The notes under the pieces are model-generated. The model saw only the letters and a program-made list of their open reading frames with translations. It made no database searches and was not told the origin of the DNA. Of a stretch of DNA of 64,000 nt, positions 1 through 36,579 are shown in pieces. The stretch is from Tubulanus polymorphus (taxonomy: Eukaryota; Animalia; Nemertea). Numbering within the stretch: the stretch's first letter is position 1; the number at the start of each line of letters is the position of its first letter. The stretch is from the NCBI RefSeq assembly GCF_964204645.1, contig NC_134033.1, positions 14,454,655-14,518,654 on the forward strand. Reading direction: 5' to 3'. The translations under genes were made by a program, and so were the position numbers.

Positions 1-2129
1 ATCGTGGTCGAAGTCCTCCAGGAACCAGCCCATATTTTTGGCCCATTCGTGTTTCGTCGTGCCGGCCATCACCGGAACTTTGTTGAACAGGCCGCCTTTT
101 AGTAACATGTCGACGCTAGATGGCAGCACATGACCGTCGATCCACGGCTTTAAATCGGTCGCTGATGGCGTTATTCTCGGAAACTGTGACCACCCCCAAG
201 AACAATGCAAAGTAACTCGATTATCGTTGTCAACAATATCAGGATCATTCAAAGCCTAACGCGCACGAGGCAGGGAACCCGAAAACAGGAAACAAGGAAC
301 TTGTTTCCGCACGTTTCGCTCTGTCCAGTGCGTTAACGATGTTTCATTGTTTCCACATGTTTCCCGTCGTCGTATGCGTTTGGCTAAAATGAAGCTGGAT
401 GTACCAGGGGTTTGGCCCCGGTTTTCTCGGAGCCCCGAAGTGTGTTACGTGTAGGTTACTGTGCTGCCGTCCCCTTCAATTATATCATTTTGATTTTTTC
501 TTTTATCTTACCCTTATCCACATTGTGTGTACTTTATTGACTTCATACTCGAAGTTTTTTATCGTAAAATTTTAGAGCTCAATAAATTTCTATTGTATTG
601 TACTTTATTGTATTGTGTACCTACTCTATGTTCGAAGAATTTTATCCAAGGCGTCGTTTTCAGGCATCGTTTTATTTCGGCCATCTCGTCGTGTTTACAG
701 TCGACGATGTTAGCCACCTCGTAGAAATAGGAACTAAGATCAGTGGATTCTTTATGGACGGCCCAGAATGAGTTCATCGCACCGCTTTCTATAATTGCTC
801 GATGAAATAAACCTGAATACGAACAAAAAAGTATTTTGAGGAGAAGAGAACACGGTGTGCGTGGATTCAATATGACTACTGCACTATGGTGTCGTTAGTA
901 AACACGATTGACCAAATGACTAGAATTATTGGTCTTGCAATACTCCTCTAACCACCAGTGCTAGGAGGGGGCCTTGCCATACATACCAACAAAAGTTAAT
1001 CGTGGGGATTACATACTTCGAGAGTAAGCCATCTAAACAAATCATCTCAAGTCAAAAACGCTAATGGCTGGTAGAAAACTATAGTTGGACAAGAAGTTAC
1101 TGATCCGAAAAGCTGAATTCCAAATATTGGGCCAAATGATTGCTTCGTTATCAATATTGCTGTGTGGTGGCGCCACCGTGCATCTGGCGGGATCTTCGTC
1201 AACCAAATTCGGATTATGGAATTTTACAATTGAAGAAACTTATTTACAATCATATTTACATAAACGTCCTTACCCATTGGCAACCGCAAGCGTAGATGCC
1301 AAGCTGCTGGACTGGGATATCTTGTGAATAAGATCGGTCATTAAGTTCAGCTAACTTATACTAAACCATCGTTTACCTTTTGACATCGGAGAAATCGTAA
1401 GCAGTCCGACGCTGGCGCCACCTGCGCTGTTTCCGAAAATCGTCACTTGATTTCTATCTCCCCGAAACGCGTATATATTCTCCTGTATCCACTTCAGCGC
1501 GAATATCTGGTCGGACAAGCCGTAATTGCCGGCCATATTTTTATCGCCGGTCGTCAGGAATCCTGCAATATTACGAACAAATAAAGCAAGGCGTTATTTC
1601 TCGGCGAATCGACGGAGGCGCTATCTCGACCGCGCACGCGTTCCTGAATCATAATCGCGCGCATATAGTCAAGAGTCGCCGACCTCCGACGACGACGACG
1701 ACAACCGACGACGAGCTGAGAGAGAGAAAAAAAATAGAAACGACACGATCGTTCGACAGAATTATTGAACACGCTCGAATAGGCTTCGTCGTTTAGAGTC
1801 GATTTAACGGAACTCGGGTGAAAGAAACGAGAAAATAGCCTGCTGTATTTTATCACCGCGCACAGGTAGTTATCGAGATGGTTAATGACTCGATGACGGC
1901 GCGGACGAGTATATACGCGTTCACGATCGACAGTCACCCGTGAAATTAGAGATATTACTCGTGTATGATTTTTGATAGATTTTCTCTTGATTTGCGCTGG
2001 TTAAGAATTTCGTAGCCTTTTCCGTACGTAATACGTTCAGAGCCGACTTTATACAAATTCAAAAGATTAAAAGCAAACTTTATTAAGAAAGAACGAAGGA
2101 CACGATCGAACTCTCTCTCTCCCTCTCTT

Positions 2130-2164
<35 letters not shown>

Positions 2165-4879
2165 CCTTCTCAAGTTGTAAATTTGGTTTTAATCAAATAA
2201 TCCACTCTCCATGTCTGAGTGTGGCTATTCTACTTTCAAGATCTTTAATTCTAATCAAATCGAAGAAATTTGCTTTTTTATCCATGTTTTTCGTGAAATG
2301 TGAATAGGCATATCTCAATAGGAAGTCAAGTGTTGAGTTTGGGTTGAGTTTTATTTGAAATGACCAAATGAATTCCAGCAGTTGAATGTGCATTTAACCT
2401 AGGTCACGCCGACTGAATCTTGCAGGCGCCTTGTCGCACCTGTCGCCGCGGCTGTCACATTACATACCTAAGACTCCGAGACGATAATTTAGAGTTATCA
2501 CGACGACTCCATATTGCGCGAGCACGTGGCCATCATAGTCACCCCCAGCGCCACCGCTGTAAGAACCGCCATGGATGTACAGCATCACTGGATAGCGGGC
2601 GTTAGGGCGGTCAATCTGCAAACATGAAGAGACATTACTGAAAACGAAGGGGCAAACCATCGGTGTAACAAGTTAGTGGTGTGCTGGGATAAATAGGACA
2701 CAGTCAAAGGGCCGCACGTAGAGAAGATATCAAGAATACGTTAAGAATGGGAAGCGTTTTGTTAGGATTCGAGCTCAACGACGATTCGGAGTACTAGGCA
2801 AGCAACCCGGGGAACTAGCTCAGATGGTAGAGCGCTCGCTTAGCATGCGAGAGGTACCGGGATCGATGCCCGGGTTCTCCACATATTTTTTTTTTATGTG
2901 TCGACTCAACGACAATCCGAAAGGAAAGTGCACGGGGAACCTACGAGAGGCAGCGGGGTCGTCCATTTTGTCCCTTTTAGTTTACCTGGAAAGGGCTGTA
3001 TATATTGACGTATAGACAATCCTCACTTCGGTCGTCTTCTAGGTCCGGATTCAACAGTTGAGGACATCTTCGAGGTAATTTCGTTGCGTCTAATACTTGC
3101 GTCCACGGCCGGCATCGCTCCGGATTCTGAAATAATATTACACGAATATATGTCAGGACAAAACGCGGTAGAACAAACACCTGATGACGCGCCCTCATGG
3201 TGGTGCGAATAAATATTCAATTGTGTGCTTGAATCTACAATCAAACTCGCGCATCTCCTCATGGTATTAGCCACCACAGCACCAAAGCTGTCCTTACTTT
3301 TTTGAGTTCAAATTTTATTTCCAATTCAATTTACTAAGTGTACGGCAAGCCATCAAATTCGAAAAGGTCATCGACATAATGACGGTCACAACTTCAACGA
3401 CTAAAGCAAGTTTGACTGGTATATTTACCTCGAATCTGAGCTCATCAACTGGAGGTTGTGCGTATGGAACACCGAGGAAGATGTCAACGGTTTCTGTCAC
3501 TTCACCTGTTCCGAGGGATAGAAATGAATTCAGACAGGCTGAGAGCAACCATCATCATTAGACATTATTTCATAACGCGCCGTCGATATACACGTCAGTG
3601 ACCGCAGGAATGGGGCAGAAATCCAGGGTTTGGTTTATAGTGTATCTTAAACCCTGATGCATAGGTGAACCATAGGTGGGGCTGGGTTTATAGATTTTGG
3701 TATCTACTTGATGATAAAAATGCTAATAATAATTGTCATTTATAGCTAGGCGCAGGTATCCCAACCAGTGTCAGTTCAAATGCGCTACAAATTCGGTATT
3801 TTTACCCCCAGCCTCCGGTCATCTCATATATCAGTATCATATACTTGAATCCGGAGGCTAACTCAATTCATTCTCAATTCAGCTAACCCGTCGAGTTGAT
3901 GCGAGTCTATGAAACCGGACCCAGGTGTCTCCCGCCTTCCCATTTAGGTCGGCCAGTTTGTTAAGACGTCAATTTGAAACCTTTGACACGCCTCAACCGA
4001 GAAACAGAACCTCTCGTATACCACCTCGTTGTTTTGGCGGCTCTTTTCCATCCCGCCTTTTCTTTTTAACTTCACTTTCTGATTTTCCTTGATTCATATC
4101 AGATGAGGTTCAGCCGATTGACAAATAGTTTTGAGAGAAATCGTGTGGGTGTGTGAACGCATGGGTAAAGAGTGAAGTGGGAATTCTGGTTCCTGCCGCT
4201 ACTAGTGATAACTTTCAAAAGGCTCACTCTGCCACATCCTCCCTCTGCAGGGACTCGAACCTGATGGCATCGCTACACTCAGCCACGGCACGAACCCCTG
4301 CATCAGTAGACCGGGTGCGCAGGTACATGCGCAGCTTTCCGAACGAAAACTGGCAGCACCAATCAGATTGCTCGTTGTATAATCGTTGAGGCAAATTTCA
4401 AGGAAGAACTATAAATGGGAAAACCCGGGTTAAAATAAAACGGGATTTCTGATTGGCTAAAAATCACATCACCTGAACTGCGCATGTATCTGCGCTCACG
4501 GTCGATTATGGCATGGTTTCGTGCCGTGGCAATCTCGATGCCATCAGGTTCGAATCCCTACCGGGGGAGGATGACTCTGCCGGTGCGTATAATTCAATAT
4601 TTCATTGTTTCATTGTTCAGGTTATTTGATTTATAATTAAATGGCAAATCATAAATCGACAATAGGATAATCACTTCATCCTTTGAAGGCTGAAATATCG
4701 AAATATTCGTGAGCCGGTGCCGGTATCCGTCGACGCTTACCGATTCCATACTTCTTCGTCGTACGAGATCCTCTGATCTGACCGAATCGTGTCTCGATAA
4801 CTGCGTATTCCGACGTGCATTTCCCCACTAACAGAAACCATACAACTAAAAACCGCAGCAATTCAGATATCTTCACCAT
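1..4879 (-). CDS. Type-B carboxylesterase/cholinesterase-family protein (neuroligin/BSAL-like fold), 5' portion; gene continues past the left window edge
   Basis: Phase-consistent GT-AG exons 4741-4879, 3429-3505, 2986-3126, 2468-2615, 1377-1562, 625-812, 1-183. They give a signal peptide ([23 protein letters not shown]) and the motifs [59 protein letters not shown] (nucleophile elbow with Ser), [10 protein letters not shown] and GTTKHE. An AG immediately precedes the ATG, so an upstream non-coding exon is implied. Confidence 0.95.
2113..2168. repeat. (CT)n/poly-C microsatellite
   Basis: Seen directly in sequence. Confidence 0.9.
2809..2881 (+). tRNA. tRNA-Ala (anticodon AGC)
   Basis: 73-nt cloverleaf GGGGAAC...GTTCTCCA with D-arm AGCTCAGATGGTAGAGC, anticodon loop TTAGCAT and T-loop GATCGATGCC. 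It is followed by an oligo-T Pol III terminator and lies antisense within an esterase intron. Confidence 0.95.
4234..4573. mobile_element. Foldback/MITE with ~100-bp terminal inverted repeats containing GGTTCGAATCC-like boxes; second copy at ~49020-49312
   Basis: ATCCTCC..GGGACTCGAACCTGATGGCATCG..GCCACGGCACGAACC..GTGCGCAGGTACATGCGCAG is mirrored by CTGCGCATGTATCTGCGC..GGTTTCGTGCCGTGGC..CGATGCCATCAGGTTCGAATCCC..GGAGGATG. Confidence 0.75.
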
Positions 4880-14636: not shown

Positions 14637-17600
14637 TCATTTCGAGTACCAGGTCCAGGTTTGACCACTTTTCTTCGCTTTTCCGGGCTTCTCTTCATAA
14701 TATGGTCCGCTACTCCAAGTCCAAGACGTACTGCCACCTGTTTTTCCAGTACCTTTCGTCGTCCATTTACTATTTTTTCTTCTTTTATTCCATTTTCCAT
14801 TCTTCCCACTTGATTTCCATTGACCATTGGAATTCTTAATCAATGAGTTCATTCCACCCTTACCACCATAAGTAAATGGTTTTAGAATCGTTCCAGATCT
14901 AACTTTTTTTCCATTCTCGTCAATGTACGACCACTGCCAGCGTCCAGCGCCACCACGTCCAGCCTTTTTGTTTAATGTACCTCCGCTATATTTGCCGCTT
15001 TGATATCTCTTTACCTTTACCTTTCCGCCCCAGAGTCCATTCTTGGAACCTATGTGACTCTGTTTACGGTTTTTCAATGAGCCGTATTTACCCAGTCTAT
15101 ATCTCATTTTCGGCCTAAATGTATAGCGTGTCTTAGCTCCAGTTCCTCCGTATCCGTACTTCCATCCACCACCACCTATCCCATGGCCTAATCCATGTTT
15201 ACCACCATGACCACCAGTTTTGAATCCTTTCCTTCTGTGTTTACCATTCATCTTAAAGCCACCGATTTGACTTCCACCGCCTCCCTTATAGCCTAATCCT
15301 TTGACACCACCAATTTTATAACCTTTCCTTCCGTGTTTACCATTCATCTTAAAGCCACCGATTCGACTTGCACCGCCTCCCTTATAGCCTAATCCTTTTC
15401 CACCACCAATTTTATAACCTTTTCTTCTGTGTTTACCATTCATCTTAAAGCCACCGATTCGACTTGCACCGCCGCTCTTATAGCCCAATCCTTTTCCACC
15501 ACCAATTTTATAACCTTTCCTTCTGTGTTTACCGTTCATCTTAAAGCCACCGATTCGACTTGCACCGCCGCTCTTATAGCCCAATCCTTTGACACCACCA
15601 ATTTTATAACCTTTTCTTCCGTGTTTACCATTCATCTTAAAGCCACCGATTCGACTTCCACCGCCTCCCTTATAGCCCAATCCTTTGACACCACCAATTT
15701 TATAACCTTTCCTTCCGTGTTTACCATTCATCTTAAAGCCACCGATTCGACTTGCACCGCCTCCCTTATAGCCCAATCCTTTGACACCACCAATTTTATA
15801 ACCTTTCCTTCCGTGTTTACCATTCATCTTAAAGCCACCGATTCGACTTCCACCGCCTCCCTTATAGCCCAATCCTTTGACACCACCAATTTTATAACCT
15901 TTTCTTCCGTGTTTACCATTCATCTTAAAGCCACCGATTCGACTTCCACCGCCTCCCTTATAGCCCAATCCTTTGACACCACCAATTTTATAACCTTTCC
16001 TTCTGTGTTTACCATTCATCTTAAAGCCACCGATTCGACTTCCACCGCCGCTCTTATAGCCTAATCCTTTTCTACCACCAATGTTATACCCTTTCCTTCC
16101 ATGTTTACCATTCGTTTTGGTACCACCCATCCAGCCCGAACCACCTTCAGTGTGGCCTAATCCCAGTCTACCACCATGAACAACAGTTTTGTATCTTCCA
16201 GTTCCATGTTTACCAATCATTCTTAAGCCACCAATGCGACCTCGACCACCTCCATTATAGCCGAATCCTTGTCTTTCACCATGGCCACCGCGTTTGTATA
16301 TTTTGGTTCCATGCTTTTTATGACGCTGTCCCTTGTGAGGCATCACATGTTTTCCTGCATGGTGTCCACGGTGTCCATGATATCCGTGATGGCTTGGTTT
16401 TCTATGGTAGTGTCCCTTGTGTGGCTTCATATGTTTTTCTGGATGATGTCCATGATGTCCTGGTTTCCGGCGATGGTGTCCCTTGTGAGGAATCATATGT
16501 TTTTCTGGATGATGTCCATGATGTCCTGGTTTTCCGTGATGGTGTCCCTTGTGAGGCATCATATGTTTTACTGGATGATGTCCATGATGTCCTGGTTTTC
16601 CGTGATTGTGTCCCTTCTGAGGCATCATATTTTTTTCTGGATGATTTTCATGATGTCCTGGTTTTCCGTGATGGTGTCCCTTGTGAGGCATCATATGTTT
16701 TTCTGGATGATGCCCATGGTTTCCTGGTTTTCCGTGAAGGTGTCCCTTGTGAGGCCTCATATGTTTTTCTTGATGATGTCCATGATGTCCCGGTTGTCCG
16801 TGATGGTGTCCCTTGTGAGGCATCATATGTTTTTCTGGATGATGCCCATGTCCCTTATGAGGCATCATATGTTTTTCTGGATGATGTACATGATGTCCAA
16901 GTTTTCCATGATTGTGTCGCTTCTGAGGCATCATATTTTTTACTGGATGATGTCCATGATGTCCTGGTTTTCCGTGATGATGTCCCTTGTGAGGCATCAT
17001 ATGTTTTTCTGGATGATGTCCATGATGTCCTGGTTTTCCGTGATGGTGTCCCTTGTGAGGCATCATATGTTTTTCCGGATGATGCCCATGATGTCCTGGT
17101 TTTCCGTGATGGTGTCCCTTCTGAGGTATCATATTTTTTACTGGATGATGTCCATGATGTCCCGGTTGTCCGTGATGGTGTCCCTTGTGAGGCATCATAT
17201 GTTTTTCTGGATGATGCCCATGTCCCTTATGAGGCATCATATGTTTTTCTGGATGATGTACATGATGTCCAAGTTTTCCATGATTGTGTCGCTTCTGAGG
17301 CATCATATTTTTTACTGGATGATGTCCATGATGTCCTGGTTTTCCGTGATGGTGTCCCTTGTGAGGAATCATATGTTTTTCTGGATGATGTCCATGATGT
17401 CCTGGTTTTCCGTGATGGTGTCCCTTGTGAGGCATCATATGTTTTTCCGGATGATGCCCATGATGTCCTGGTTTTCCGTGATGGTGTCCCTTCTGAGGTA
17501 TCATATTTTTTACTGGATGATGTCCATGATGTCCTGGTTTTCCGTGATGGTGTCCCTTGTGAGGCCTCATATGTTTTTCTGGATGATGTCCATGATGTCC

Positions 17601-20600
17601 TGGTTTTCCGTGATGGTGTCCCTTCTGAGGTATCATATTTTTTACTGGATGATGTCCATGATGTCCTGGTTTTCCGTGATGGTGTCCCTTGTGAGGCATC
17701 ATATGTTTTTCTGGATGATGTTCATAATGTCCTGGTTTTCCGTGATGGTGTCCCTTGTGAGGCTTCATATGTTTTTCTGGATGATGTCCATGATGTCCTG
17801 GTTTTCCGTGATGGTGTCCCTTGTGAGGCATCATATGTTTTTCTGGATGATGTCCATGATGTCCTGGTTTTCCGTGATGGTGTCCCTTGTGAGGCATCAT
17901 ATGTTTTTCTGGATGATGCCAATGATGTCCTGGTTTTCCGTGATGGTGTCCCTTGTGAGGAATCGTATGCTTTTCTGGATGATGTCCATGATGTCCTGGT
18001 TTTCCGTGATGGTGTCCCTTGTGAGGCATCATATGTTTTTCTGGATGATGTCCATGATGTCCCGGTTTTCCGGGATGGTGTCCCTTGTGAGGCCTCATAT
18101 GTTTTTCTGGATGATGTCCATGATGTCCCGGCTTTCCGTGATGGTGTCCCTTGTGAGGCCTCATATGTTTTTCTGGATGATGTCCATGACGTCCTGGTTT
18201 TCCGTGATGGTGTCCCTTGTGAGGCCTCATATGTTTTTCTGGATGATGTCCATGATGTCCTGGTTTTCCGGGATGGTGTCCCTTGTGAGGCATCATATGT
18301 TTTTCTGGATGATGTCCATGATGTCCTGGTTTTCCGGGATGGTGTCCCTTGTGAGGCCTCATATGTTTTTCTGGATGATGTCCATGACGTCCTGGTTTTC
18401 CGTGATGGTGTCCCTTGTGAGGCCTCATATGTTTTTCTGGATGGTGTCCATGATGTCCTGGTTTTCCGTGATGGTGTCCCTTGTGAGGCCTCATATGTTT
18501 TTCTGGATGATGTCCATGATGTCCTGGTTTTCCGTGATGGTGTCCCTTGTGAGGCATCATATTTTTTACTGGATGATGTCCATGATGTCCTGGTTTTCCG
18601 TGATGGTGTCCCTTGTGAGGCATCATATGTTTTTCAGGATGATGTCCATGATGTCCTGGTTTTCCGTGATGGTGTCCCTTGTGAGGCATCAAATGTTTTT
18701 CTGGATGATGTCGATGATGTCCTGGTTTTCCGGGATGGTGTCCCTTCTGAGGCATCATATGTTTTTCTGGATGATGTCCATGATGTCCTGGTTTTCCGTG
18801 AAGGTGTCCCTTGTGAGGCATCATATTTTTTACTGGATGATGTCCATGATGTCCTGGTTTTCCGTGATGGTGTCCCTTGTGAGGCATCATATGTTTTTCT
18901 GGATGATGTCCATGATGTCCTGGTTTTCCGTGATGGTGTCCCTTGTGAGGCATCATATGTTTTTCTGGATGATGTCCATGATGTCCTGGTTTTCCGTGAT
19001 GGTGTCCCTTGTGAGGCATCATATGTTTTTCTGGATGATGTCCATGATGTCCTGGTTTTCCGTGATGGTGTCCCTTGTGAGGCATCATATGTTTTTCTGG
19101 ATGATGTCCATTATGTCCGTGATGGCCTGGTTTTCTGTGGGTCTTGAGAGGCTTCATATGTTTTCCTGGAAGATGGTCATGATGTCCGTGATGTCCTGGT
19201 TTTCGATGACGATGTGCCTTTTGAGGCTTCATATGTTTTCCTGGATGATGTTCATGCTGCTCTGGTTGTGTATGATGGTAACCTTGCTTTCTAGGATTTT
19301 TTTTCGGTGGCCTATTAAATGAAGTTATCGGCAGTTTTGATGCAGGGGATAGAATGGGTCCGATTAACCGTGTTGGTCTTTCAACACGGGGCTGTGTCAG
19401 CTGAGCACTAGATGAAGGTACCGGAGCGGGAGCGTTTGACTTGTGCCTTGCACCAGGATGTTCTGATGGTCCATGCCCTTTTCCTAGTGGCTTCTTACCT
19501 TGTGGTTTTGCAGCAGGCTTCTTTGTCTCCTGCCCCTTTGGTTGAGGCTTCCTACCTTCTGGTTTCTTAGTCTCGGTTGGTTTCGGTTGTAGCCCCGCAC
19601 CAGGCAGCTGCATTGTTTCATGTATCTTTGGTTGAGGCTCTCTACCAACCGGTCTCCTAATTTCAGGTCTATTTGGTTGTGGCTTAGCACCAGGGGGCTT
19701 CCTTATTTCATGCCTCCTTTGTTTTTTCTTCATGCTAACAGGTTTCTTAGTTTTAGGTTTTGACTTCTCACCAGGTGGCTTCCGTGTTTTATGCCCCTTC
19801 TGTTGAAGTGTCGTACCGCTAGGCTTCTTTGTTTCGGGTCCATTTGGCTGTGGCCTCGCACCATGTGTCTTCATTATTTTTGGCCTCTTTGGTTGTTTTT
19901 TCGGTTTCTCAGCTTTAGGTTTTGACTTCGCACCAGGTGGCTTCCGTGTTTTATGACCATCTGCTTGTTTTCTCGTTTCAGGTACATTTGGTTGCTGTTT
20001 CATACCTGGAGATTTATTTGTTTTACGCCCACGTGGAGGCTTCGTAGCGTGTGCATACGAGGGTGGCTTGATCGGTCGTACAGTGACTGGTGCAGTTTTA
20101 TACCAAGGATATCGCGGTGACCAGTACGGGTAGTTGGGGTATGGTCCTATTGATTGCCTGTAAACTGGTTCACCGTTATAACCAATCAAAGGTTTGCCAC
20201 CTCGGTCGATTAGGGGACGGATCGGATACCCGCTAGAGCTGTAAATCATCCTACCGTTTGGACCTCGCACGAAATCACGCCATGGCATTCCGGGCCATGT
20301 TGGATTATCGTTGTTTCGATATCCCCGTTGGAGGGGATATCTCGGTGAAAACCGAAAATATCGTTGTTGTCTAAAGAAGGGTTCATATCTACTTGATGGA
20401 GACATCGGATACCATCGATCGCCGGGACTTCCATAATTCTTAGGAAAGTGATCTTCTGGAAGCCTTTTCGGAACAGGCTTTCTACGTTTATCGTTCGGAT
20501 TTTCTTCCCCGGCGCAATTGAATATTTTGTCCCTCACGAATGCCGGATTCTGGGCGTTACCAGCAGTCATTGTGACAAATCTATCACCAAAGAAGTCAAT

Positions 20601-22070
20601 ATCTTTAATCGGCTTATGCTTACCGATGAGGACGATTGTCACACCGAGACGTTTCAACACAGCCAATTCGTGCGAGCCTAAGTAATTATGTTTGACATCA
20701 CTGGTGAAAATAACGACATACTTGCGCGCGCCAGCTCTACCGTATCGCTTAAACATTACCCCTGCCTGGTTGTGTAATGAAGAAAGAAAATTGAGCGTAA
20801 AGGACTCGACAAGGCATATGGTCAAATATTCAAAATCATCTAGAACTGTTATGTATTTGTATAAATCTGTCTATTCAATAGTTCAATAATGTGTGTCATC
20901 ACACTTCTGATCTAAGAGGCAGAAAACAATGTAGTTTAATACAGCATTAGACAATCTCAACGTCATTTTGATTACAATAAGTTAAATCATCAGCGTGAAA
21001 GCTCCATTTCTTTGACTTTCACAATGCAGTTATGCCTCTTACTAAGGTATATACATATTTGTAATCCTTCCGATATATATGATGTCACGGTTCTGTGATA
21101 TACAGACCTGATAGAGACTCTCTTGAAGTCCGACCTGTTCAAATGGTGACGAACGCACGACGCACCATGCTGAAATCCGCTTAATAGCGCGGCGTAGGTC
21201 ACCCATACATCCGAACTCATTCATAGAGAATTCAACCTATAAAACATTTAAATTTCAACTAATAAGCAATCATATTTCGATCGGAAATTGAGGTGCAGCA
21301 GTTGACGATTAGTCCATAGGTTTCTCTGTCCCGATGACCTCACCCATACAGTGAGAGATATGGAAGTCACGAACGATGCTATGATTGGTTTAGCGATGGA
21401 AGTCAGATTTCCAGTTATTTTCAGTTTCACCTCATACTTACAGTAGGTTTGTAGGTGTATCTCATTACACCGATCCGCACGGTATCTTCATCTTCACCGG
21501 CGTTTACCGACTTCAACAGCGCGTTCGCCACATCCCGCAAGCTACCCGACATTCCCTGTGTCCCGCATCGAGCATCTTTTATAAACACTATATCTGCTTT
21601 GTAATCAGCCGGACAGCCATCTATTGATAAATAAGAAAATAATTTAGAAATGGAATAAGAATTGCATAAGCGTACGAAGTCAAACGAATAAAACATTTAG
21701 TGTTTGGAAGAGGCCCACCCTATATGCTGTCTTCGTATCGCATGGCTTTATCTAACATTCGCTGCTCTAGAAGGCAGTGACTACTGGAAAAGTGTGTTCG
21801 TTCATCTCTTAATACTGCGAAGAAACTAACCATAGACATCTACCATTCATTAAATAGGAAAAACAGAAAAATCAATGGATAGCTCATCTGTTATTAACAA
21901 TCAACTATTATTGTTGTACTGCACTGAATCTATGCTCTTATGGTTTACGTATTTTGTGGGCTATCGTAAAGATTATCTACGTCATTCGATCTAAACACTA
22001 ACTTACCATCGGCGATGATCAGTTGGTAATTCCAGACAACTGCCAACACGAAGAATAGTGTGGACGGCAT
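14637..22070 (-). CDS. Secreted ~2166-aa VWA-domain protein with His-rich and Gly/Lys/Tyr-rich tandem repeats (putative structural/adhesive protein)
   Basis: Exons 22007-22070 (MPSTLFFVLAVVWNYQLIIAD, signal peptide), 21442-21620, 21108-21236 and 14637-20765 are phase-consistent. They join into a VWA fold: ADIVFIKD..VRIGVMRYTYKPT|VEFSMNEF..LRRAIKRI..LYQ|AGVMFKRYGRAGARKYVVIFTSD..LKRLGVTIVLIG. A 6.1-kb terminal exon carries the repeats. A probable 5' UTR exon has its donor at ~22233. Confidence 0.9.
15210..16130 (-). repeat. Coding 96-bp tandem repeat (GGFKMNGKHGRKGYKIGGVKGLGYKGGGGSRI)n, 9 units plus degenerate flanks
   Basis: TCTTAAAGCC recurs every 96 bp from 15251 to 16019. Confidence 0.97.
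16330..19260 (-). repeat. Coding 66-bp tandem repeat (HHPEKHMMPHKGHHHGKPGHHG)n, ~43 units
   Basis: 22-aa unit with 9 His, plus a few 14-aa truncated units. Confidence 0.97.
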
Positions 22071-25000
22071 CGCTAGCCTGTGTCAAGGCTGAAATATATA
22101 TAATGCCCCTTTACATTAATTGTCATCGTCAAAAATGATTATCAATTAAAAGGATGATACGTAATATAAATGATAATGCATGTATGAAATGTAAAATTCA
22201 TACGTTTATGCTTCTTCGATCAAAAAAACTTACCTTTCGTCCACAGGTCTACAATAAAGAGACGTCTTTATGTCACTATTCGACCTGAATAGACCGGCGC
22301 TCATTTTATTTCGTGGTTTCTACTTGAGGTACGATGGGAGCATCTGTCGAAGGAACTTGAAATAGTTCGTGATTTGCTTTAGACATGAGTACGTGTTTTC
22401 ATTTTCGTACGCATCTCGACAAATATATATATATATATATATATAATACAATACATTAATTCTTTTAAGTCGTTTTTGCTTGAAAATTGTTAATTAATAT
22501 GTGGGGCGGGTTTCCCCGATCTAGCAGCTCTTAGCCACGGAATTACGACCGATTATAATGCGTATAAGGGCTATTAGAACGCACGCGCGCTGTGAATTCA
22601 AATTAGCCACAGAATTGAACGCAATATATTAACTAATTGCGTGAAACAAAAGACTTTCACGAAACTTCTCGCTATGTCGAAAACGTTATAAATCACTTCA
22701 ACAAATCGATTTCCCATTCTACATGACTTAAGCTTTATTCGTTGGCAAATCCACCGTAAAACGTGAAAATCCTACAACTGTAACTTAGGCTAACAGTTGA
22801 ACAGTTGATATGAAATAGGACACGAATCACTGTACAAATTACGGTAACTGACGTGTGTAGAAATAAGATCATTTCAAGGAGTGAAACCTTTGTTAAGGTT
22901 CACACAGAGGGATCGGAAAGAGTTACAATCGAAGCGGGTCAATAATATGTCTTTTCGAAAGGTTGCTGTTGTTTGCGAAATAAAATTTGAGCATTGAAAA
23001 TTATGTCAATCGGTGTTCTCGTCATTTGCCTCGTCATCTGATTGTTAGAAATCCGTCATCCGATCGATTTTATTTGATAAGGTTTTGAAGCGATAAACAA
23101 CGAAAAGATGAAAGATTTCGAAGTTTTAATTTGAACTGCTGGAATCATACGGTACCTAGATCAGCTTGCGCTGCTGATCCTAGTTGTCTAATTTCCTTCG
23201 ATTAAACTAAGCTCCGATGAACCACGCCGTTTCGATTTCCGTTTCATACATGAAAATGAAAGAAAAGTTTAATTAGTCTCCGAGCGCGGGGTTGATTGAT
23301 GTCAAACCTAGCGATTAGTTTGAGTTACCGGTCGTCCGTTTCAAATTACACGTGATTCACAATATTACAAATATCGCTTATACCCTAAATGTCAAGTAAA
23401 AATACAATGAAAATACAGTCGCGGATCCGGGAGGGGTCATTTGGGTGCAAGCACCCGGGAGAAAATTACTTCAGGTGCCTGGGCACCCCCTTAGGGAATT
23501 TGCCTAGGGATTCTTGATTATTTAGTTCAAGTTTTTCAACGCTACATTGCGAAATATACGTGCTATAATTTTGAATATTATTATGATTTAACAATGACGA
23601 AAAACACCTAGAATGCATGAAAGTAAGTAAGTAAGTAAGCCATCTCCACTTTGAAAACCTGCACCCAACCCTGAAATACCCCTAGTATTCTTGTTATGAA
23701 GTGTATACTTATTTTCAATACACTTTTATGAAAATCGCATTTAACTGAAAAAAACTAGTTTATTCCGAGATACAAACTCGGAATTAACGTCGGAAATTTT
23801 CGTAAAAATACATATGTCCCCAGGACGCTTCTGTAGACATCAATATATACTTTATTCGAGCGATCGCTTCTAACGGTGATATCATGATATTAATCTTCAT
23901 TCATTCGTCGTTTTAAGATTTCAGTAAATGTCTTCTTATACGTCTCATTTTCAGGACGCTCAGTTAGTTCATTTTCAATGTTTTAAGTCAAATTTAACTC
24001 GGAACTGTGGAACTGGGTCCACATAGTATCAGGTATGAAGCAGTCGCTTCCGCAATTCAGTCTGATTTCGTATGAATTTTGTTATGTGATGACACTCGTC
24101 GATAAACCGCTTAAAGATCGAGGCTAACAACACGGCGCGCGATATACAATTATCCTTAAAACAATCAGCGCGACGATGCATCGATCATCTTTTTTTTCTC
24201 GCCGCAGAAAAGGCAGGCAGGCGACGACGATCTGAACCAATCGAAGCGACAGTAGGATTAGCGCCGATGAAGAGAAATAAGATTTGATTACAAGATCGGC
24301 GATAGCTTTTTCAGTTTTTAACGTCTGCTCTGTCACGCGATAATCAAACGCTTAAAGGTCTGTATGTATGTAAGTTTAGGCTAGAAAATGATACCCTGTC
24401 TCTTCGTCCGCTGATCCGTCTTAAAAATTGACCCGGCTGGCCACCTCTGTACAACATTTTTTTTAAATCTATATCATGCTAACCATAACATACCCGGCAG
24501 CTATAGAAATGAACTGATTACAAATTCTTTTGCTCTTTACAAAAGTGACCCGGTCGATTAGGAGAAACCAGGTATCATTTTTAGCCTAATTTCCATGAAT
24601 AATACGTTTACAAGGATTTAAAGGAATGGGCTGAGCTTGTGGGACGAATGATACAGTAGGTCCTAGCCCACGAATGAGAAACTTCGGCTGTAAACTGTTT
24701 TACTTAGAAGTTGACACCAATTAAGTGACCATTCAGAAGAGCTTAAGAAAAAATCAGAGATCGAGAGAGACGTGTGTCTTTGGGTTTTATATCCATGTAG
24801 ACTTTGTTATCGTAACATCTAAAGCAATAACCAGGAATTATCAATACTGACCGTGATGACCAGTACGCAGGACTTTCTTGATTGATCAGGACGTCACGTG
24901 TCCTGAGCAATCGTCTTACGGAACAGTAATCTCCATAGATTGAAAAAAAGTTTTCTGTTTTGTTCGATATATTGGTACTTAACAAGAAATTAATCCAATA

Positions 25001-25644
25001 AAACATATATGAATAACGTAAAAATCATAAAAAACATTTTTTCTCTAAATCTCTGACTCGTTCTTAAACACTTTCGAGTTGTGGCAAAAATTCCGAATGC
25101 ACTTATTTTATTCGATCAATTTTCGATGAAGCCGATTCATACGAACTTGTCTAACAGTCGTGTCTGGTAAATGCGTTCGACGGGTTCTAAACGATATTTC
25201 TGAAAGGAAACATACTTGCTGCATCCTTCAACCCTTCAACCGGCACGTACTTATCGAGCATTTTATCAGAGCACATCGGGGATGGTCCCTGCCGAACGCC
25301 GTCGCCAATTAGTAGTTGTAAAAAAGAAGTAACAATTAATTTTCTTGAAGCGACCATGAGCAGAAGATTCCCGATAGATGTCTCTGCTAAAATGATTAAA
25401 TGTTGTCCGAGAATAACGATAGATGTCGCTGATGATCGCATGGTTCTCGTAACAGCTCCCTCAGATACCTCTTCTAAATACCGGATTCCCTTCTCGAGTG
25501 CAGGATTCTTATCTTAATTTGCACATAAACGCCAGTATCTGTAAAGCCTAGCGTGCATCGGAATAGCCACTGATCGTATCCGCTATCCACTATCCAATAT
25601 CCAATATCCCGGTATCGCATTTGAGATTTTCAGGACTTTCCAGA

Positions 25645-25860
25645 AGTGATATGTTGTGCCATGAAATGGGCGATGAGTTTCATGTGCTCCTGAAATGTAA
25701 TTAATATTCTGATTTGCGCCAGAAACATATACCAAAGTTTGATTGGCAGTGGCCAAACGTTATCAAGTCCAGGACATTGCTTAATTAAAGAAAAAGTATC
25801 CTTATTTTTGAAGTTAATTTTGCAAGCTAGAAAAATGATGCAGAACTATCTTCTACAAAC
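25645..25860 (+). mobile_element. Decayed 3' end of a non-LTR retrotransposon ORF2 (C-terminal CCHC-like region)
   Basis: Translates to MGDEFHVLLKCN*YSDLRQKHIPK, resembling the (G/E)DExHxLLxC..LRxKY motif at LINE ORF2 C-termini; contains an in-frame stop. Confidence 0.55.
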
Positions 25861-26427
25861 TAGCGCAGACATTTATATATTTCCTCATTTTCTTGTAATG
25901 AAAATACGGGATAAAGTTGAAATGCTGACTTTTACAATAAATAGCCACTCGCTAGTGAGTGAGTGCTCTGCAAACATCGAAACATCGAAAAACTGGTGTA
26001 AACCGGCAATTGCATGGCTCCGAGCTTCGTGCTTCGTGGGGGCCAAGCAAAAACCAGAAGGCCAGAAGAACACATTCAAGCAGCTGATTGCATCCAGCCA
26101 GTTCCTCTCATGCGCCGAAAACTGCCTTGCAACTTGTTGTCTCCGGTTAGCTTAAACGCAGGTCAACTCCACCGAGTGAGGAAAATAAAGAAAAAAGACA
26201 ATTACTCCGGTTTAACCTACAGAGCGTTTATCGATTTATTGTCATACTCGTTTAAAGTCGAATTCTCATTCGAAATAGCGTCAAATTTTTATATATCATC
26301 AGATTGTATGTGAAATTACATGAAGTTTTATTCAAAAGGTTGACTTTGATAAATCTTGGTTACTATACGTTCGGCTTATCAAATTGAACGGTAAGCGTGT
26401 GTTCCGAGGCATCTAGTAAATTCGCTT

Positions 26428-27002
26428 TTACTTCCGTTTAGCTGCTTCTGCCTTTCGTCTTTCAATCTCTTCTTTTTCCGCTTTGCCTACAGATACGTAG
26501 AAAGAACAAATATTTCGATATTTTTACCACATCAAGTCGGGCATGATTCCTATCGATGGGTCTCTACATTCAGTGAAGGATTCATTTTCTATCTAATTGT
26601 GGGTGTAAGATTAGGATTGTTCGACATACATAATTTTCCTCATATTTCCTTCTGGCATTTTCCCCTGGCATTTTTACCTATGGCGTGAATTTTCCTTTGG
26701 CATTTTTACCTCTCGCATTTTTACTTCTGGCATTATTGCCTATGGCATTTTTACCTCTGGATTCACAGGGTCCAGTTCCACCGTTCTGAGTTATATGACT
26801 TTTAACTCAGAGTTAACTTGAACTCACAGCTGTGGAACTGGATCCAGTTGATTTTGTTGTATATCATAGTTTTAAACTTACTCAGCGGCTTATCCGCGCG
26901 ATAAACGTCACTTGCCGGTTGTGACGTCATTCCAACTGCCATAGTAAGAGCGGTGCCATCTTGCGGTGGTCTTTGATCGGGCTGTTCTTGTTTTTCAGAC
27001 AT
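26428..27002 (-). CDS. Small unknown protein (~59 aa, 2 coding exons), paralog of the gene at 44229-45151
   Basis: Exons 26882-27002 and 26428-26486 (phase 1): MSEKQEQPDQRPPQDGTALTMAVGMTSQPASDVYRADKPLS|KAEKEEIERRKAEAAKRK*. The start codon is uncertain. Confidence 0.65.
26650..26760. repeat. Degenerate ~15-bp tandem repeat (TGGCATTTTTACCTA-like)
   Basis: About 6-7 imperfect units. Confidence 0.7.
26768..26845. mobile_element. Short palindromic MITE with GG(A/G)(T/C)CCAGTT termini (PIF/Harbinger-like). Relatives at ~27430-27522, 23960-24020, 47678-47770, 50400-50790, 51576-51688
   Basis: TIRs GGxCCAGTTCCACAG ... CTGTGGAACTGGxTCC, or GGxCCxGTTTTATAGACT ... AGTCTATAAAACxxGG, around an internal GAGTTAACTC motif. 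Superfamily assignment is inferred. Confidence 0.7.
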
Positions 27003-29129
27003 CGGTGTATCGACTGGCGATTCGAAAGACAAAAAAGGCGTATTGTATATACAGAATAGTATGCGATTGCGATTTGCATATGCAAATGAGCCAGCATACG
27101 ACCATATTCAACAGTTATCGATCAGGAAATTCACCAAAAAATGAAAACACAAATAAATCTTAATCTTCCTAATATTATTTTCAGATGTTAGAATAAACTA
27201 CGCATTAATCAATTAAACAGGAGTGTTATTTCTGATTATTCAACAATAAATCTAAATCGTTAATTGGAGAATATGTTGATTTAAAGGCATGGACAATTTT
27301 CAAATGAGATATCTATGTTCATTTTCACCGGATCAATGCGTTACATTAATGTAAGCCATAACGATATGAATACAACAGTAAATATTCAGTCGACATTGTA
27401 AAAAAACATCAAAATTATATTTATACTTCCGGATCCAGTTCCACAGTTGTGAGTCAGAGTTAATTCTGAGTTAAAATCAGTTCATTTTCAATGACTTAAC
27501 TCATAGCTGTGGAACTGGGTCCTGGCGATCTATTCACATAAGTATTTCAGGTCGCACAATGATTAGGTAAAACGGGATAGTGAAACGTTCTCACGGATTT
27601 CTATTCAGTCGATAGATTATACATTTTCTTTCGCATGTTATCGATTTACAATTTTTATCTCGATAGCAAATACGCACCAGGCGTCTATTTGCATAACAAG
27701 GGTCTCTAGTGTTCTGTGAATTATTTTGCGCTCATTTTCACCGAACGTGTCGGAACACGGCTAAATGTTATGACTGCGAGTAGGGCGTTTATATGTGCGC
27801 GATAGTGACGCGGCGAACCGCACCACTAAAACTCAGTACTACTTCGTATGGAAACTTGCACTTTCTGGTTTACATTCCCCGAAGAGACTATAACCCTGTA
27901 ACTACCATATGTTTCAATGCAACATCGGATAGTTTTAACTCGTGCAATCGTGTCGTAGTTGTGCGCATTCGTATTTGCGATAGTTTCTTGGAATTTAATT
28001 CATTCGTAAACAAGTAAGTTCATTTCTTTTTTTTGTATCATAGGGCAGCCCTGAAGGTCGTATGACATAATAAAGCCGTAAACTTCGGTTTTCACGCAAG
28101 TCAGCCATTTTGTGTAACAGGTGTTGACGAATTTAGAGCACGAAGAAACTTTTTACGTTAGTTTAATTAATTTCTGGTCCTGAAACAGAATTCATACATA
28201 ATTTATGGCTCACCTGCTGTTTCCGATATGGCTGTCGTTCGGTTAAGTTTTGATCGTGGCAATGTCGGCTCGTGACGTGGACCCTTCAAATCTAGGACAC
28301 ATTAATATCACGTGATGCAAAAATTCCAGACTACAACAGTTTCATATTGCGAAATAATATCCGAAACGAACTAAACAGAACAAAGGATTTTGATATGAAG
28401 AATTATTTCATCATTTTAATTTCAATTTCCTTAGTTATTTCTACCATTCAAGCGGTTACAGTGATTATTTATTACTATATCAAATTTAACAAAATTATTG
28501 GAAACTATCGGGCACTAGAAAATCGTCACAACCGACGGATAGTTCGTTGTATCCAGGAAAGAAATGTCTTGAACTTTTTAATTTGGTTTAAATTCTGAGA
28601 TTGTTATATCCAATCGTCGTATACAAGTTCTTCGTTGCAATGTTTAAGTATAGGAATCCTTGTGGAATCACTCCATAAAAATCAAAACTTCATATCATTT
28701 TTCACTAAATCCAACACCAACTATCGTGGACGTGCTTTCATTTCGCTTATCTGAAAATACAGTTATGAAAATTAATCAAATGCAGTTGAATCTTGAAACT
28801 ACAAAAAACTCTACTTGGTGCAGGGAAAATATCATCGTTCGCAAAATAACATTAATCCCAATTTTTCCACTAAGGCATATTATTTCTAGACGATAAGGTT
28901 TAGATCAGTTTTTTTTTTGTTTCGGCTCCTAGAATGATATCACGATGCAATCTCGGATATATCTATCTATAACTTCGTTCGTAAATCGAATGAATGAAAA
29001 GGCAGCGGTAATCTCCTAACGAGGTAAAAATGTAACTTCGCTTTAAACGACATTGTCTTTTTAAGGTAGCAAAATATTTCGAATTATCAGTACGACATTG
29101 TTTGATACGGATGAAATCTTCTGAAAGAG

Positions 29130-29426
29130 CTATCTAGATAAAAAGTGCACCCACCAACGACGATTTGCATCAAAACCGGGAATATTTGAATCTTTAATCC
29201 CTACATTGTAACCGCGGATTCTTCCGCAGAAACAGGTGACGATCAGAATGTTTCGTTGACGGTAGTACCAGTCAAGACTTCCATACGAACATTGTGGCGA
29301 ATGTTCTTCGTCGATGTCGTTCCGATACAACCAACAGTAACATGCTCTGTAAAAACGTCCACCTTTCTGCCAATAATGGCATGCATCGTGGTAATGGTCT
29401 TCGCGTCGATAGCCGGTGGGTAACAT
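29130..29426 (-). CDS. Cluster gene A: ~90-98-aa Cys/His micro-protein (2x H-C-C-C module + SNIP motif); CaaX tail lost
   Basis: MLPTGYRREDHYHDAC..CYC..HSPQC..CFCGRIR..SNIPGFDANRR. Exon 1 (29155-29426) is 272 nt, the same as gene B. Splicing to the homologous exon at ~28700-28750 creates TG|A stop. TATA and octamer lie upstream. Confidence 0.75.
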   Translation of the reverse strand: MLPTGYRREDHYHDACHYWQKGGRFYRACYCWLYRNDIDEEHSPQCSYGSLDWYYRQRNILIVTCFCGRIRGYNVGIKDSNIPGFDANRRWWVHFLSR

Positions 29427-29499
29427 TTTCGTAAAATCGGTGACAATATTTGCTCAAAGAAACTTCTTGAATGCAATTCCAAGTTTCCCACTTGGCAAT

Positions 29500-29592
29500 T
29501 TATAGTCAACACAAAAGAAAGAAGACGTGTCTTTATTTGCATATTGCGTACTCACGCCCTTTTCAGTTATTCTTAGTTCGGCGGAAAACCCT
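29500..29592 (-). promoter_or_regulatory. Conserved proximal promoter of cluster genes (kB-like GGGTTTTCC, octamer ATGCAAAT, TATAAA); equivalents upstream of B, C, D and H
   Basis: Octamer at 29535-42, 31158-65, 35110-17 and 38624-31, with variant ATGTAAAT at 32894-901. GGG(T)4-5CC at 29583-91, 31197-206 and 35213-21. TATAAA lies ~70-80 nt before the ATG in A, B and C. Confidence 0.55.
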
Positions 29593-30357
29593 TCGTTTTC
29601 TTGCGCAAAGCTTTATTAAAGCGAGAAAATTTTGACAATAATTCGTTCTAAAAAATACTTTAAGAAATTTTCACGATTCGTAGTTTTAAAAATCATCGTC
29701 TATCTTCGACAATTGTATCGAATTAATTTTCAATATGATATTTCATGCGATCTTCAATTTTTATTCGTCAAAAAACATAACATTTATAGTCACCGTTCTC
29801 AAAATTCCCAGTTCTTCTCAATGACTAATTTTAATATGATATTTCGTGTGATCTTTAATCTTGATTCGTCAAAGAATCATAAAATCTGTCGCCGTTCCCA
29901 GTTCCTCTCACCAAAGACGACATTGACTTCAGAAATGGGAATAATCACGTCAGCGGATTCCTGCACAATAGCATTTCATAGCCAAGATCCGAAACAAACA
30001 AAACAGAACAAAACCCTTCGATATAAAGAGTTAATTCATCACTTTAATCTGATTTCAATTTTCTTCGTTATTTCACTACACATTTTAAGCAATAACATTG
30101 ATTCTTTATTACGATATTAAGCTATTAAGATAAAATTACTAGAGAAACTATGGGACATTAGAAAATCTGTTCCTTATAACCGATAGTTCGTCGTATCCGG
30201 AAAAGAATTGTCTGGAACTTTAAATTCTAAGCTTGTTGTATCAGATTAATCGTTATGTCCAATAAGCATCCACGGCAAGTTCTTCATTACAATTCGAAAG
30301 TATCGGAATCCTAGTAGAATCACTCCATAAGAATAAAAATATTAATATCAGAATTGT

Positions 30358-31052
30358 TCACAAAATCCGACACCAACTATCATCGTCGTTCCTTCTTTCC
30401 GCTTCTCTGAAAATATATTTATGAAAATAATTAGATACAGTTGACTCTTGAAACTGCCAGGAAATCTATTTGGGTGGGCGAAAATATTAGTGTTCTCGGA
30501 CATTATTCCGCACTTTCCTCTAATGTATACCATTTCCACATGAGAATTTCCTCTGGATTCCATTTATAAATTTGTTTATAAAATAAATGTGGCGGGATCA
30601 CCAAAAAGACAGTACAGATGCAACTGCGCTCTAAACTAAATCGTCGTTAAAGTTTCGACAATAATTCTAACCATCAATAAAGCATAGTTCGACACGGTTG
30701 AAAAACATTTGGCAAAATTGTGTCGATTGTTTCGATTTATTTAAACTATCAACGTTCTATCAGCTCCCAGCATCACTCACCTATTACGGCATACATCTAT
30801 GTTGGGCAGATTTGATTCCCTATGCTGATGGTAATGACCACGGATCCGTCCACAGTAACAGGTGACGATGAGACGATATTTACCTTCATGGATGTAGTAT
30901 TTTCCATGCAAACATTTTGGGCCGTGTTTCTCGCGATTCACAATTTCACGCGAAGAATCGCAACAGCATTTTCTGTAAAAATACTTGCATTGTCTCCAAT
31001 AACGGCATCGATTATTATAATGCTCCTCGCGTCGAGAACCGGTGGCAGACAT
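30358..31052 (-). CDS. Cluster gene B: 106-aa protein, 2x H-C-C-C module + SNLP motif + CaaX (CRIL)
   Basis: Exons 30781-31052 and 30358-30406 (phase 2): ...HYNNRC..CCC..HGPKC..CYCGRIR..SNLPNIDVCRNR|EAERRNDDDSWCRIL*. Confidence 0.85.
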
Positions 31053-31932
31053 TTTTCGTAAAATCAGTGGTAAGATTTGCTACAAGAAACTTCTCGAATG
31101 CAACTCCGAGTGTCCCGCCTGGCAATTTATAGTCAACACGAAACACGACGTGTCCTTATTTGCATATTGCGCCCTTTCAGTTATTCTTAGGTCGGTGGAA
31201 AAACCCTCGATTTCTTACGCAACTTTTTTATGAAAAAGCGAGAGAATTTTGACAATAATTCCTTTAAAAAAATACTTTTAGAAATTTCTGCGATTTGTAG
31301 ATTTAAATCATCGTCTATCCTCGAAAGATTGTATCGAATTAATTTCATTCAATCAATTCTAGTATGATATTTCATGTCATCTTTAATCTTAATTCGTCAA
31401 AAAACATTACATTTATAGTGACCGTTCTCAAAATTCCCAGTTCCTCTCAATGACTGGGATATACATCAAAAATGGGAGTATTTGACGTCCCCTGTCGTAT
31501 TATTGCTACTGTTGCTACTTTGACTAGATTTTTTTTTTACAATCATTATTCGAATTCCTTGCGCTCAACACAAAAACAGTTTCAGATTTCGAAATGGATC
31601 AGAAACGACAAACAAACCACCAAAGAAATACTTTTAAGCCTTAAATTAAGTATTAATAGATAATTTTATTCTTTTCTTCTCTTAAACTATTTCAGTGGAA
31701 CCTCGTTACATTGAATTCCAGTGCAGAAAAAAATCTGTGCTTTTTAAGTGATTATTCGTCGATAGTTCGTCGCATTCGGTATGGAATTAACTAAATTTTC
31801 TATCTTGGGATGAAGTCGTATGGCCGTAATGTCCGATAAATCGTTTTATTCAATAGTTATATGCAATATTTATATCCAAGTTCGTCAAAAGTAGGTTTCA
31901 CTGTAGAATTAGAGAGAATACATCGGAATTCC

Positions 31933-35566: not shown

Positions 35567-35830
35567 CTATTTGCGATAAGTGTCGGCAGTAGGAAGGTTA
35601 GAACTACGCTGATCCGGTGACACTACCCCACATTCGCAATTAATTCTAATCGTTTTTAGTCCCGCGTAACAACAATCAAGCGTCGTCGCCCAACACTCTT
35701 TCGCAGTATGATTCTGCTGGCCGTTTGGATATTTCTGATATTCGCAACAAGTTGAAGTACATTGTGTAATCAATCTGCCGTTCTTCGTTTCAAACGAGCA
35801 TTCTTTCTCGTGTGTGAAATTGTTCTTCAT
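35567..35830 (-). CDS. Cluster gene E: 87-aa single-exon Cys/His micro-protein
   Basis: HEKEC..CTSTC..HTAKEC..CECG..SNLPTADTYRK*; no signal peptide. Confidence 0.8.
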   Translation of the reverse strand: MKNNFTHEKECSFETKNGRLITQCTSTCCEYQKYPNGQQNHTAKECWATTLDCCYAGLKTIRINCECGVVSPDQRSSNLPTADTYRK

Positions 35831-36327
35831 TTTGTCAAACCAATATTCAACTGAACTCGATATTCGTCCTCACATTGCCGTATTCAATTCAATGCATTGC
35901 AGAGGACAATGTTGATTGGTTATTTTCAATCACGTGACAGCTATTGGAATGGATACCATTTAACCAATCGCCTTTATAAATCGCGCCATTCAGACGAGTT
36001 TTTTATCATTTAAACCTTTGTATGGTGAAAAACTATATTCGTTCAGAGTTCCTCAAATTCCAAATATTTACAATCAAATTCCTTATATTTTCACTCGACC
36101 TGGGCTTAACTTTCTTTTCATATATCTTCAAAAACTGCAATTAACTTAGAACTACGACGGGTATTTTTACCGGACTTTTTGCCGATTGCTTTTTGTTCCA
36201 AATGATATATTTCAACTGAATGAATATCGGTAGATTTATTCAAATGTTTAATCGCATTCACTTCGTCAAATTCAATCGATCCTGACCATACTAAAAAGGA
36301 CCTCATTCTCGCCAACTACTTACCTTA

Positions 36328-36579
36328 TTATTTTCTGATTTGATCAAAAACAGGCAGGTTGGAATTCCGCACTTCGCTCCCGGTCCATTTCCCACATACA
36401 CAATTAATTTTCATCGTTTTGTCTACCCCGTTGGTATATTTCACCTCTGCCAGACAATACTTATCATTATGAGTTAGAACATCCGGATATTTTCTAAATT
36501 CATCACAACTTTGATCACATTGTTGCACCAATTTGTCGCCCTTCCTTTCGAACGAGCACGCATTTGAGTGAACGGACAT
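36328..36579 (-). CDS. Cluster gene F: 83-aa single-exon Cys/His micro-protein
   Basis: HSNAC..CDQSC..HNDKYC..CVCG..SNLPVFDQIRK*; clearly homologous to E; TATATATA upstream. Confidence 0.8.
   Translation of the reverse strand: MSVHSNACSFERKGDKLVQQCDQSCDEFRKYPDVLTHNDKYCLAEVKYTNGVDKTMKINCVCGKWTGSEVRNSNLPVFDQIRK

Follow-up and report, generated by a model that had tools for sequence, protein, structure and literature searches.

A 64,000-nt stretch of the genome of the nemertean Tubulanus polymorphus (contig NC_134033.1, positions 14,454,655 to 14,518,654; here called the window) carries on its minus strand, at 22070-14637, a gene for a giant block protein. With a probability of about 45%, we regard its product as a polycationic scaffold that is specific to this lineage, is secreted by glands and belongs to an extracorporeal material, in all likelihood the self-secreted tube. 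As predicted from the DNA, this is one intact four-exon gene with a product of 2,157 or 2,166 amino acids (aa), about 240 kDa in all. The chemistry of such a molecule, with His-rich, cationic and VWA-bearing secreted blocks, is well precedented. The gene and its blocks are laid out as follows.

22089-22233, minus strand: possible intron in the 5′-untranslated region, suggested by the sequence only, with a perfect AAG/GTAAGT donor and a TTTCAG acceptor 18 nt before the ATG
22007-22070, minus strand: coding exon 1, the ATG and a 21-aa signal-peptide-like leader, with a phase-1 donor (8/9 consensus)
21442-21620, minus strand: exon 2, VWA strand 1 to strand 2, 2 Cys
21108-21236, minus strand: exon 3, VWA middle, 2 Cys
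14637-20765, minus strand: exon 4, 2,042 residues, 229 kDa alone
20505-20765, minus strand: start of exon 4, VWA C-terminal half with the closing Cys
20070-20504, minus strand: Tyr/Arg/Pro/Trp block of 145 aa, with 18% aromatic residues and 13% Arg
19278-20069, minus strand: Pro/Lys spacer, 264 aa, Pro 19%, Lys 19%
16320-19277, minus strand: His block, 986 aa, 66-nt unit
16113-16319, minus strand: Gly/Lys/Arg linker, 69 aa
15249-16112, minus strand: nine Gly/Lys/Tyr 32-mers, 96-nt unit, without an acidic residue
14637-15248, minus strand: Gly/Lys/Ser/Thr/Trp block of 203 aa at the C-terminus, with three W-x-W motifs and closed by a TGA stop

An intact reading frame, with repeats under mild purifying selection

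The minus-strand frame of exon 4 runs free of stops for 2,077 codons (20870-14640), and the 699 exon codons outside the tandem repeats are open in this frame only (chance about 2e-18), the other five frames holding between 6 and 51 stops. Chance alone can keep a tandem array free of stops, and over the 66-nt array two plus-strand frames do lack them; the long plus-strand open reading frames (ORFs) over the arrays were rejected as repeat shadows, since they end at the array edges and carry no significant synonymous excess. Three upstream exons join exon 4 through GT-AG sites with compatible phases, exon 3 having two possible donors, one at 21135 (for an exon of 34 aa) and one at 21108 (for 43 aa), both GT and both in phase. 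The exon 1 leader (9-aa hydropathy 2.99) is predicted to be a signal peptide on hydropathy alone, and no transmembrane segment was found in exon 4. With that qualification, the block order proposed in the original prediction (signal peptide, VWA, Tyr/Arg/Pro/Trp, Pro/Lys, His, 32-mers and Trp-rich end) is confirmed.

The repeats are under mild purifying selection, the proportion of synonymous differences among copies exceeding that of nonsynonymous ones (0.093 vs 0.057; 0.107 vs 0.041). With transitions and transversions held fixed, 12 synonymous variants were counted against 7.4 expected (p 0.028) and 7 against 3.7 (p 0.045), an excess seen in the coding frame only. Over 19290-22700, the other haplotype and another individual show silent and missense differences from the assembly and no stops, and their indels are confined to intron 1. 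The sequenced animal's two haplotypes differ at six single-nucleotide polymorphisms within 58 bp (20016-20073), three of them missense, and one polymorphism there abolishes the only N-glycosylation sequon of exon 4. The three sequencing runs compared are DNA; two of them, X2 and X3, cover the introns and carry a proximity-ligation linker, which sets them apart from RNA. The array length is given as assembled.

A His-rich array flanked by cationic, aromatic-rich blocks

Tandem Repeats Finder resolved two arrays, one with 43.3 copies of a 66-nt unit over 16377-19267 and the other with 9.4 copies of a 96-nt unit over 15210-16113. The His block, exon-4 residues 497-1482, consists of His (37%), Gly (17%), Lys (14%), Pro (13%) and Met (7%), with three Tyr in 986 aa (0.3%) and almost no Asp. 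Its core (19100-16443) comprises 41 units, of which 39 have 22 aa and two have 14 aa; at the DNA level they represent 28 distinct sequences, and the array includes a recent internal duplication of 372 nt. About 950 aa of a 41%-His 22-mer had been predicted here; the 41% holds for the consensus unit (9/22 His), the block as a whole being leaner in His and slightly longer. Each 22-mer has three Pro, and the Met-Met pair said to accompany the His is found in about 24 of the 39 units and is not a strict feature, the first Met being kept in 37 of the 39 and the second in those ~24.

The nine cationic 32-mers are present as originally described (Gly 38%, Lys 18%, Arg 7%, Tyr 6%), their Tyr nearly always occurring as G-Y-K, a tripeptide counted 17 times. 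Two further claims also stood: acidic residues are few (Asp plus Glu, 76 of the 2,042 exon-4 residues, 4%), and the last Cys is exon-4 residue 84, at the end of the VWA domain. For exon 4, a net charge of about +690 at pH 5.5 and about +330 at pH 8.1 was calculated. Aromatic residues are concentrated in the blocks at both ends (18%, 9% and 13%), compared to 0.4% in the His block.

A VWA domain without its metal site

Homology searches and folds were run exon by exon. On these comparisons, the VWA domain of the original prediction is real but divergent, has lost its MIDAS (metal-ion-dependent adhesion site) and carries five Cys. Exons 2, 3 and 4 match, collinearly, positions 1-49, 54-74 and 94-143 of a profile for which 13 VWA domains from the T. 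polymorphus genome were used; exons 2 and 4 outscore all 500 shuffles, and exon 3, a weak match, does not. Exon 2 also matches the A domains of collagen VI alpha-3 (E 1.3e-7, summed over repeats). For the VWA half in exon 4, mussel PTMP1 was the only match among PDB sequences (E 0.058), and Pfam VWA (PF00092) on this C-terminal half alone gave E 0.13 and 12.9 bits, against a family gathering score of 23.8 bits. VWA clusters led its Atlas matches and integrin I domains topped a weak fold search, both below significance, and its single-sequence fold was of low confidence (predicted local distance difference test, pLDDT, 49).

Where the MIDAS motif is DxSxS...T (PMC4597212), the DxSxS here reads D-A-R-C-G, the loop-2 Thr is absent and T-S-D replaces T-D-G. 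Of two extra Cys, the alignment places one in the DxSxS loop and the other three residues ahead of the MIDAS Thr position, and this pair may staple the MIDAS face. The first and last Cys sit at what is presumably the position of the usual N-to-C disulphide, and the fifth may be free for an inter-chain bond.

A single-copy gene with no detected relative

The original prediction had recognised neither the repeat nor the architecture, and both still appear to be without a match in the libraries, Atlas and metagenomes searched. Exon-4 residues 1-240 and 500-2042 had no relative in a word-indexed protein library, among proteins 0.55-1.75 times the query length, and none was found for the VWA half plus aromatic block in a search of 1.84 billion proteins, where three matches (plectin-repeat, low-complexity and FERM proteins) were discarded as due to composition only. 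Atlas and metagenome searches returned no relative, and Pfam had no match to the repeat blocks. Paralogue searches of the animal's own genome recovered the gene itself only, and the gene is single-copy; a match on C7 was a simple satellite, and a paired W-T-W DNA pattern was no commoner than its control. This absence of relatives is provisional, as nemerteans are thinly sampled and the largest search covered the VWA half and the aromatic block.

A candidate scaffold of the tube

The original prediction had proposed a tube, cocoon, jaw or adhesive protein. A secreted structural material fits the anatomy, and the host is a Tubulanus, a tube-secreting genus: as described for T. sexlineatus, members of the genus make self-secreted, cellophane-like tubes (PMC11167275). 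The jaw, by contrast, is excluded by anatomy, and the motif tests for nereid jaw and squid-beak proteins were negative as well. To our knowledge, nemerteans have no jaws. Non-hoplonemerteans generally have no stylet either (PMC6410017).

In the tube reading, the protein would be stored in acidic granules with its ~400 His protonated, at the net charge of ~+690 calculated for exon 4. It would condense, in the granule or at release, with a polyanion such as a sulphated glycan, a phosphoprotein or an acidic partner protein, a partner that we propose because the protein has no acidic block of its own. In seawater, the His would deprotonate, the net charge would halve to ~+330 and the His/Met 22-mers could become sites of reversible Zn/Cu cross-links. 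With three Pro per unit, the His block should be non-amyloid and extensible. On either side, the blocks rich in aromatic residues and Arg would work like the stickers of a telechelic gel former, and the VWA head would serve as an assembly module and not as a metal-dependent binder; VWA heads and sticky ends together might form the network junctions. Besides the architecture and composition, the synonymous excess in the coding frame and the stop-free alleles, parallels from other systems speak for this scheme: in many marine materials, His responds to pH and binds metals (PMC9999432), cationic Gly/His proteins are complexed with polyanions in tubeworm cement (PMC12621633), and VWA proteins recur among marine adhesives (PMC12817120). 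An unrelated secreted-type gene 1.4 Mb away, with a His-Met-Asp block and an acidic Glu/Asp/His tail, also speaks for this reading.

Simple coacervation with pH, which had been put forward for this protein, is unlikely at a charge of ~+330 at pH 8.1 and with a His block of 0.3% Tyr and 13% Pro. Self-coacervation of the squid-beak His-Tyr type in particular is unlikely because the protein is a strong polycation in seawater with so few Tyr in this block, and a Zn-induced amyloid of the Nvjp-1 type is disfavoured because of the three Pro per 22-mer. Complexation with a polyanion, for which tubeworm cement (PMC12621633) and flatworm cohesive proteins (PMC9229212) are models, is, on our analysis, likely to fit better than coacervation of the protein by itself. 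The complete picture, that of the main metal-cured scaffold in the Tubulanus tube, with a disulphide-stapled, MIDAS-less VWA head, a ~350-nm Pro-rich His/Met self-healing segment and aromatic cationic sticky ends, is doubtful when all its parts are taken together.

Several points weigh against the tube reading. The sequence cannot by itself separate a tube from a proboscis glue, a pseudocnida, mucus or an egg mass, and there is no homologue from which a function could be transferred. The p-values for selection are modest, and the repeat copies share a history and so are not independent. Furthermore, no RNA run was found to contain the gene, all three runs compared being DNA, and the literature searched gave nothing for Tubulanus on metals, tissues or the composition of the tube.

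If that complete picture is correct, a film-forming underwater material would have evolved independently in nemerteans, a phylum for which we found no structural secretion protein described; no paper in the literature searched says which proteins make up the tubes or glues of these worms. A tube protein would mean that His-metal materials arose independently once more, in an elastic, Pro/Lys-rich design that differs from jaw and beak proteins. The gene is a concrete candidate with two short, synthesisable repeat units.

Alternative readings

The protein could instead be a proboscis secretion, either a prey-holding glue or part of the wall or core of the pseudocnidae, cationic and cohesive like the flatworm adhesive proteins ap1 and ap3. 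Tubulanids have pseudocnidae, for which an adhesive role has been proposed (PMC7897414), the proboscis of unarmed nemerteans gives off glue-like secretions (PMC6410017), and Gly, Arg, Lys, His and Ser together make up ~70% of each of the two repeat blocks, compared to 88% in Tmed-ap3 (PMC9229212). We nevertheless consider this origin unlikely, as the literal GRKHS motif is missing and no relative was found despite the wide occurrence of pseudocnidae across Palaeonemertea and Pilidiophora.

A soluble protein of the epidermal mucus, without a structural role, is an improbable reading. It would be a polycationic, heparin- and metal-binding antimicrobial or metal scavenger, likened to kininogen domain 5, histidine-rich glycoprotein or histatin. 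The His/Gly/Lys composition and an N-G-K-H stretch recall antifungal peptides of kininogen domain 5 (PMC3173955), and the several RxK/RR sites along the protein could free fragments. However, most of the activity of those kininogen peptides is lost in physiological salt (PMC3173955), and seawater is saltier; there is no sequence homology, and the size of ~240 kDa, the strict block order and the VWA head suit a material better.

The same chemistry would serve a protein of an egg mass, sperm coat or internal matrix, since the product is predicted to be secreted, is cationic and bears a VWA domain. Fast-evolving orphan genes are common among reproductive coats, which counts for this explanation; no specific feature points to the gonad, and we find it quite improbable.

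To curing through 3,4-dihydroxyphenylalanine (DOPA) or dityrosine, in which the G-Y-K block would form the bonds on the model of mussel foot proteins or Pc-1/Pc-2, we give little credence. It is compatible with a tube and differs in the curing route. Tyr stands beside Lys in the cationic repeats, as in the DOPA adhesives (mfp, Pc-1/2), with 25 of the 33 Tyr of the C-terminal part adjoining Lys or Arg, and haem peroxidase loci are present in the genome. Tyr, however, makes up only 6% of the C-terminal part and 2.7% of exon 4, and the sole tyrosinase locus detected (C7 4.25 Mb, L039 4058-5119, 593 aa; to be counted as at least one, as exon-split genes may be missed) has a C-terminal transmembrane segment, which leaves the DOPA curing raised in the original prediction weakly supported. 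An exon of this tyrosinase is 100% identical to the NCBI protein of T. polymorphus, in agreement with the host species.

That the gene is silent or decaying, or its array inflated by assembly, is very improbable: gene and array length are known from DNA and from the assembly alone, and the protein libraries searched held no self-match, but the splice sites and frame are intact, the bias is synonymous, the 41 units comprise 28 distinct sequences and no disruptive allele occurs in 19290-22700.

Other genes in the window and in the genome

Elsewhere in the window, a small two-exon gene at 45682-46638 (plus strand; with the leader at 45682 and the second exon inside the ORF 46222-46638) encodes a secreted Gly/Tyr/His-rich protein with no Pfam match, another candidate material protein. 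A multi-exon VWA/EGF/VWD gene occupies ~47200-58100 (minus strand), with an intronless rhodopsin-family G-protein-coupled receptor nested opposite to it at 53818-54801 (plus strand); a look-up with this receptor returned no match. The window further holds carboxylesterase exons at 1-2700 (minus strand), a tRNA-Ala(AGC) gene at 2809-2882 (plus strand), exon-like ORFs without a Pfam match at 25190-27107 (minus strand), preceded by a 15-nt tandem repeat at 26651-26760, and duplicated small Cys/His-rich ORFs at 29133-31079 and 35570-36588 (minus strand).

Outside the window, His-Met repeats recur across the T. polymorphus genome. A secreted multi-domain gene at C2 ~20.49-20.50 Mb (minus strand; L050 4375-5883, L051), with Cys modules that resemble protease inhibitors by eye, has a 503-aa Met/Gly/Lys exon with a 20-aa His/Met/Pro/Lys/Trp repeat, and an ORF at C3 5.43 Mb (plus strand; L052 4516-5484) combines an 11-aa Gly/His/Pro/Met/Phe repeat with poly-His. 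These and other His/Met/Lys repeat genes (C9, C2, C3) showed no alignable homology to the present gene where compared exon by exon. A secreted-type block-repeat gene 0.29 Mb away is extremely Lys-rich; this gene and the one 1.4 Mb away resemble the present gene in style, with no sequence that could be aligned. No COI gene was found in the assembly. About ten similar small VWA genes stand in tandem at C8 10.76-10.98 Mb, with a relative at C9 13.74 Mb. The genome holds several comparable candidate material proteins, which tempers the surprise.

Comparison with known systems

Very high His together with Gly, offering candidate Zn/Cu ligands, is shared with Nereis Nvjp-1 and the Glycera protein MTP, and the 37% His of the repeat region lies above the 25% taken as the mark of nereid and glycerid jaw proteins. 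The jaw motifs GYGHG, GYGGH and DYG are all absent from the protein. Nvjp-1 is a protein of 32-40 kDa with 36% Gly, 9% Asp, 6% Glu and 7% Tyr that forms amyloid with Zn (PMC9999432), whereas the present chain is many times heavier and its His block has half as much Gly (17%), with 14% Lys, 13% Pro and almost no Asp or Tyr. For the squid beak HBPs, a His-dependent pH response is expected, likewise here; the GHGxY pentapeptide does not occur in the protein, and, unlike in the HBPs, His and Tyr lie in separate blocks and the net charge is high.

Among flatworm adhesives, Mlig-ap1 and Tmed-ap3 are giant secreted polycations rich in Gly, Arg, Lys, His and Ser, as here, and Mlig-ap1 joins its polycation to folded domains (PMC9229212), although the folded domain here differs. 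The protein contains no GRKHS and nine GRK tripeptides, shows no homology match to these proteins and is dominated by His rather than by Lys/Arg. The sandcastle-worm proteins Pc-1, Pc-2, Pc-4 and Pc-5 are basic, Gly-, Tyr-, Lys- or His-rich and complex with polyanions (PMC12621633). They are separate small proteins, whereas here the Gly/Tyr/Lys and His blocks and the VWA domain are joined in one chain, for which DOPA is weakly supported.

The mussel proteins mfp-4 and preCol, secreted for thread or plaque, likewise contain a block of His-rich repeats, and reversible Zn cross-links have been shown for the His domain of mfp-4 (PMC12817120); in contrast to these, the present protein has no collagen domain and another repeat, and homology was not found. 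A secreted VWA is shared with the adhesive proteins mussel PTMP1, ascidian ASP-1 and Pinctada P-UF1. In PTMP1, two tandem VWA domains form most of the protein, whereas here a single VWA without MIDAS is attached to low-complexity blocks that total ~1,950 aa and take up more than 90% of the chain. In summary, this protein appears, from its sequence, to belong to none of the tested families beyond that of the MIDAS-less VWA domain and to work like known His-rich and cationic biomaterial proteins.

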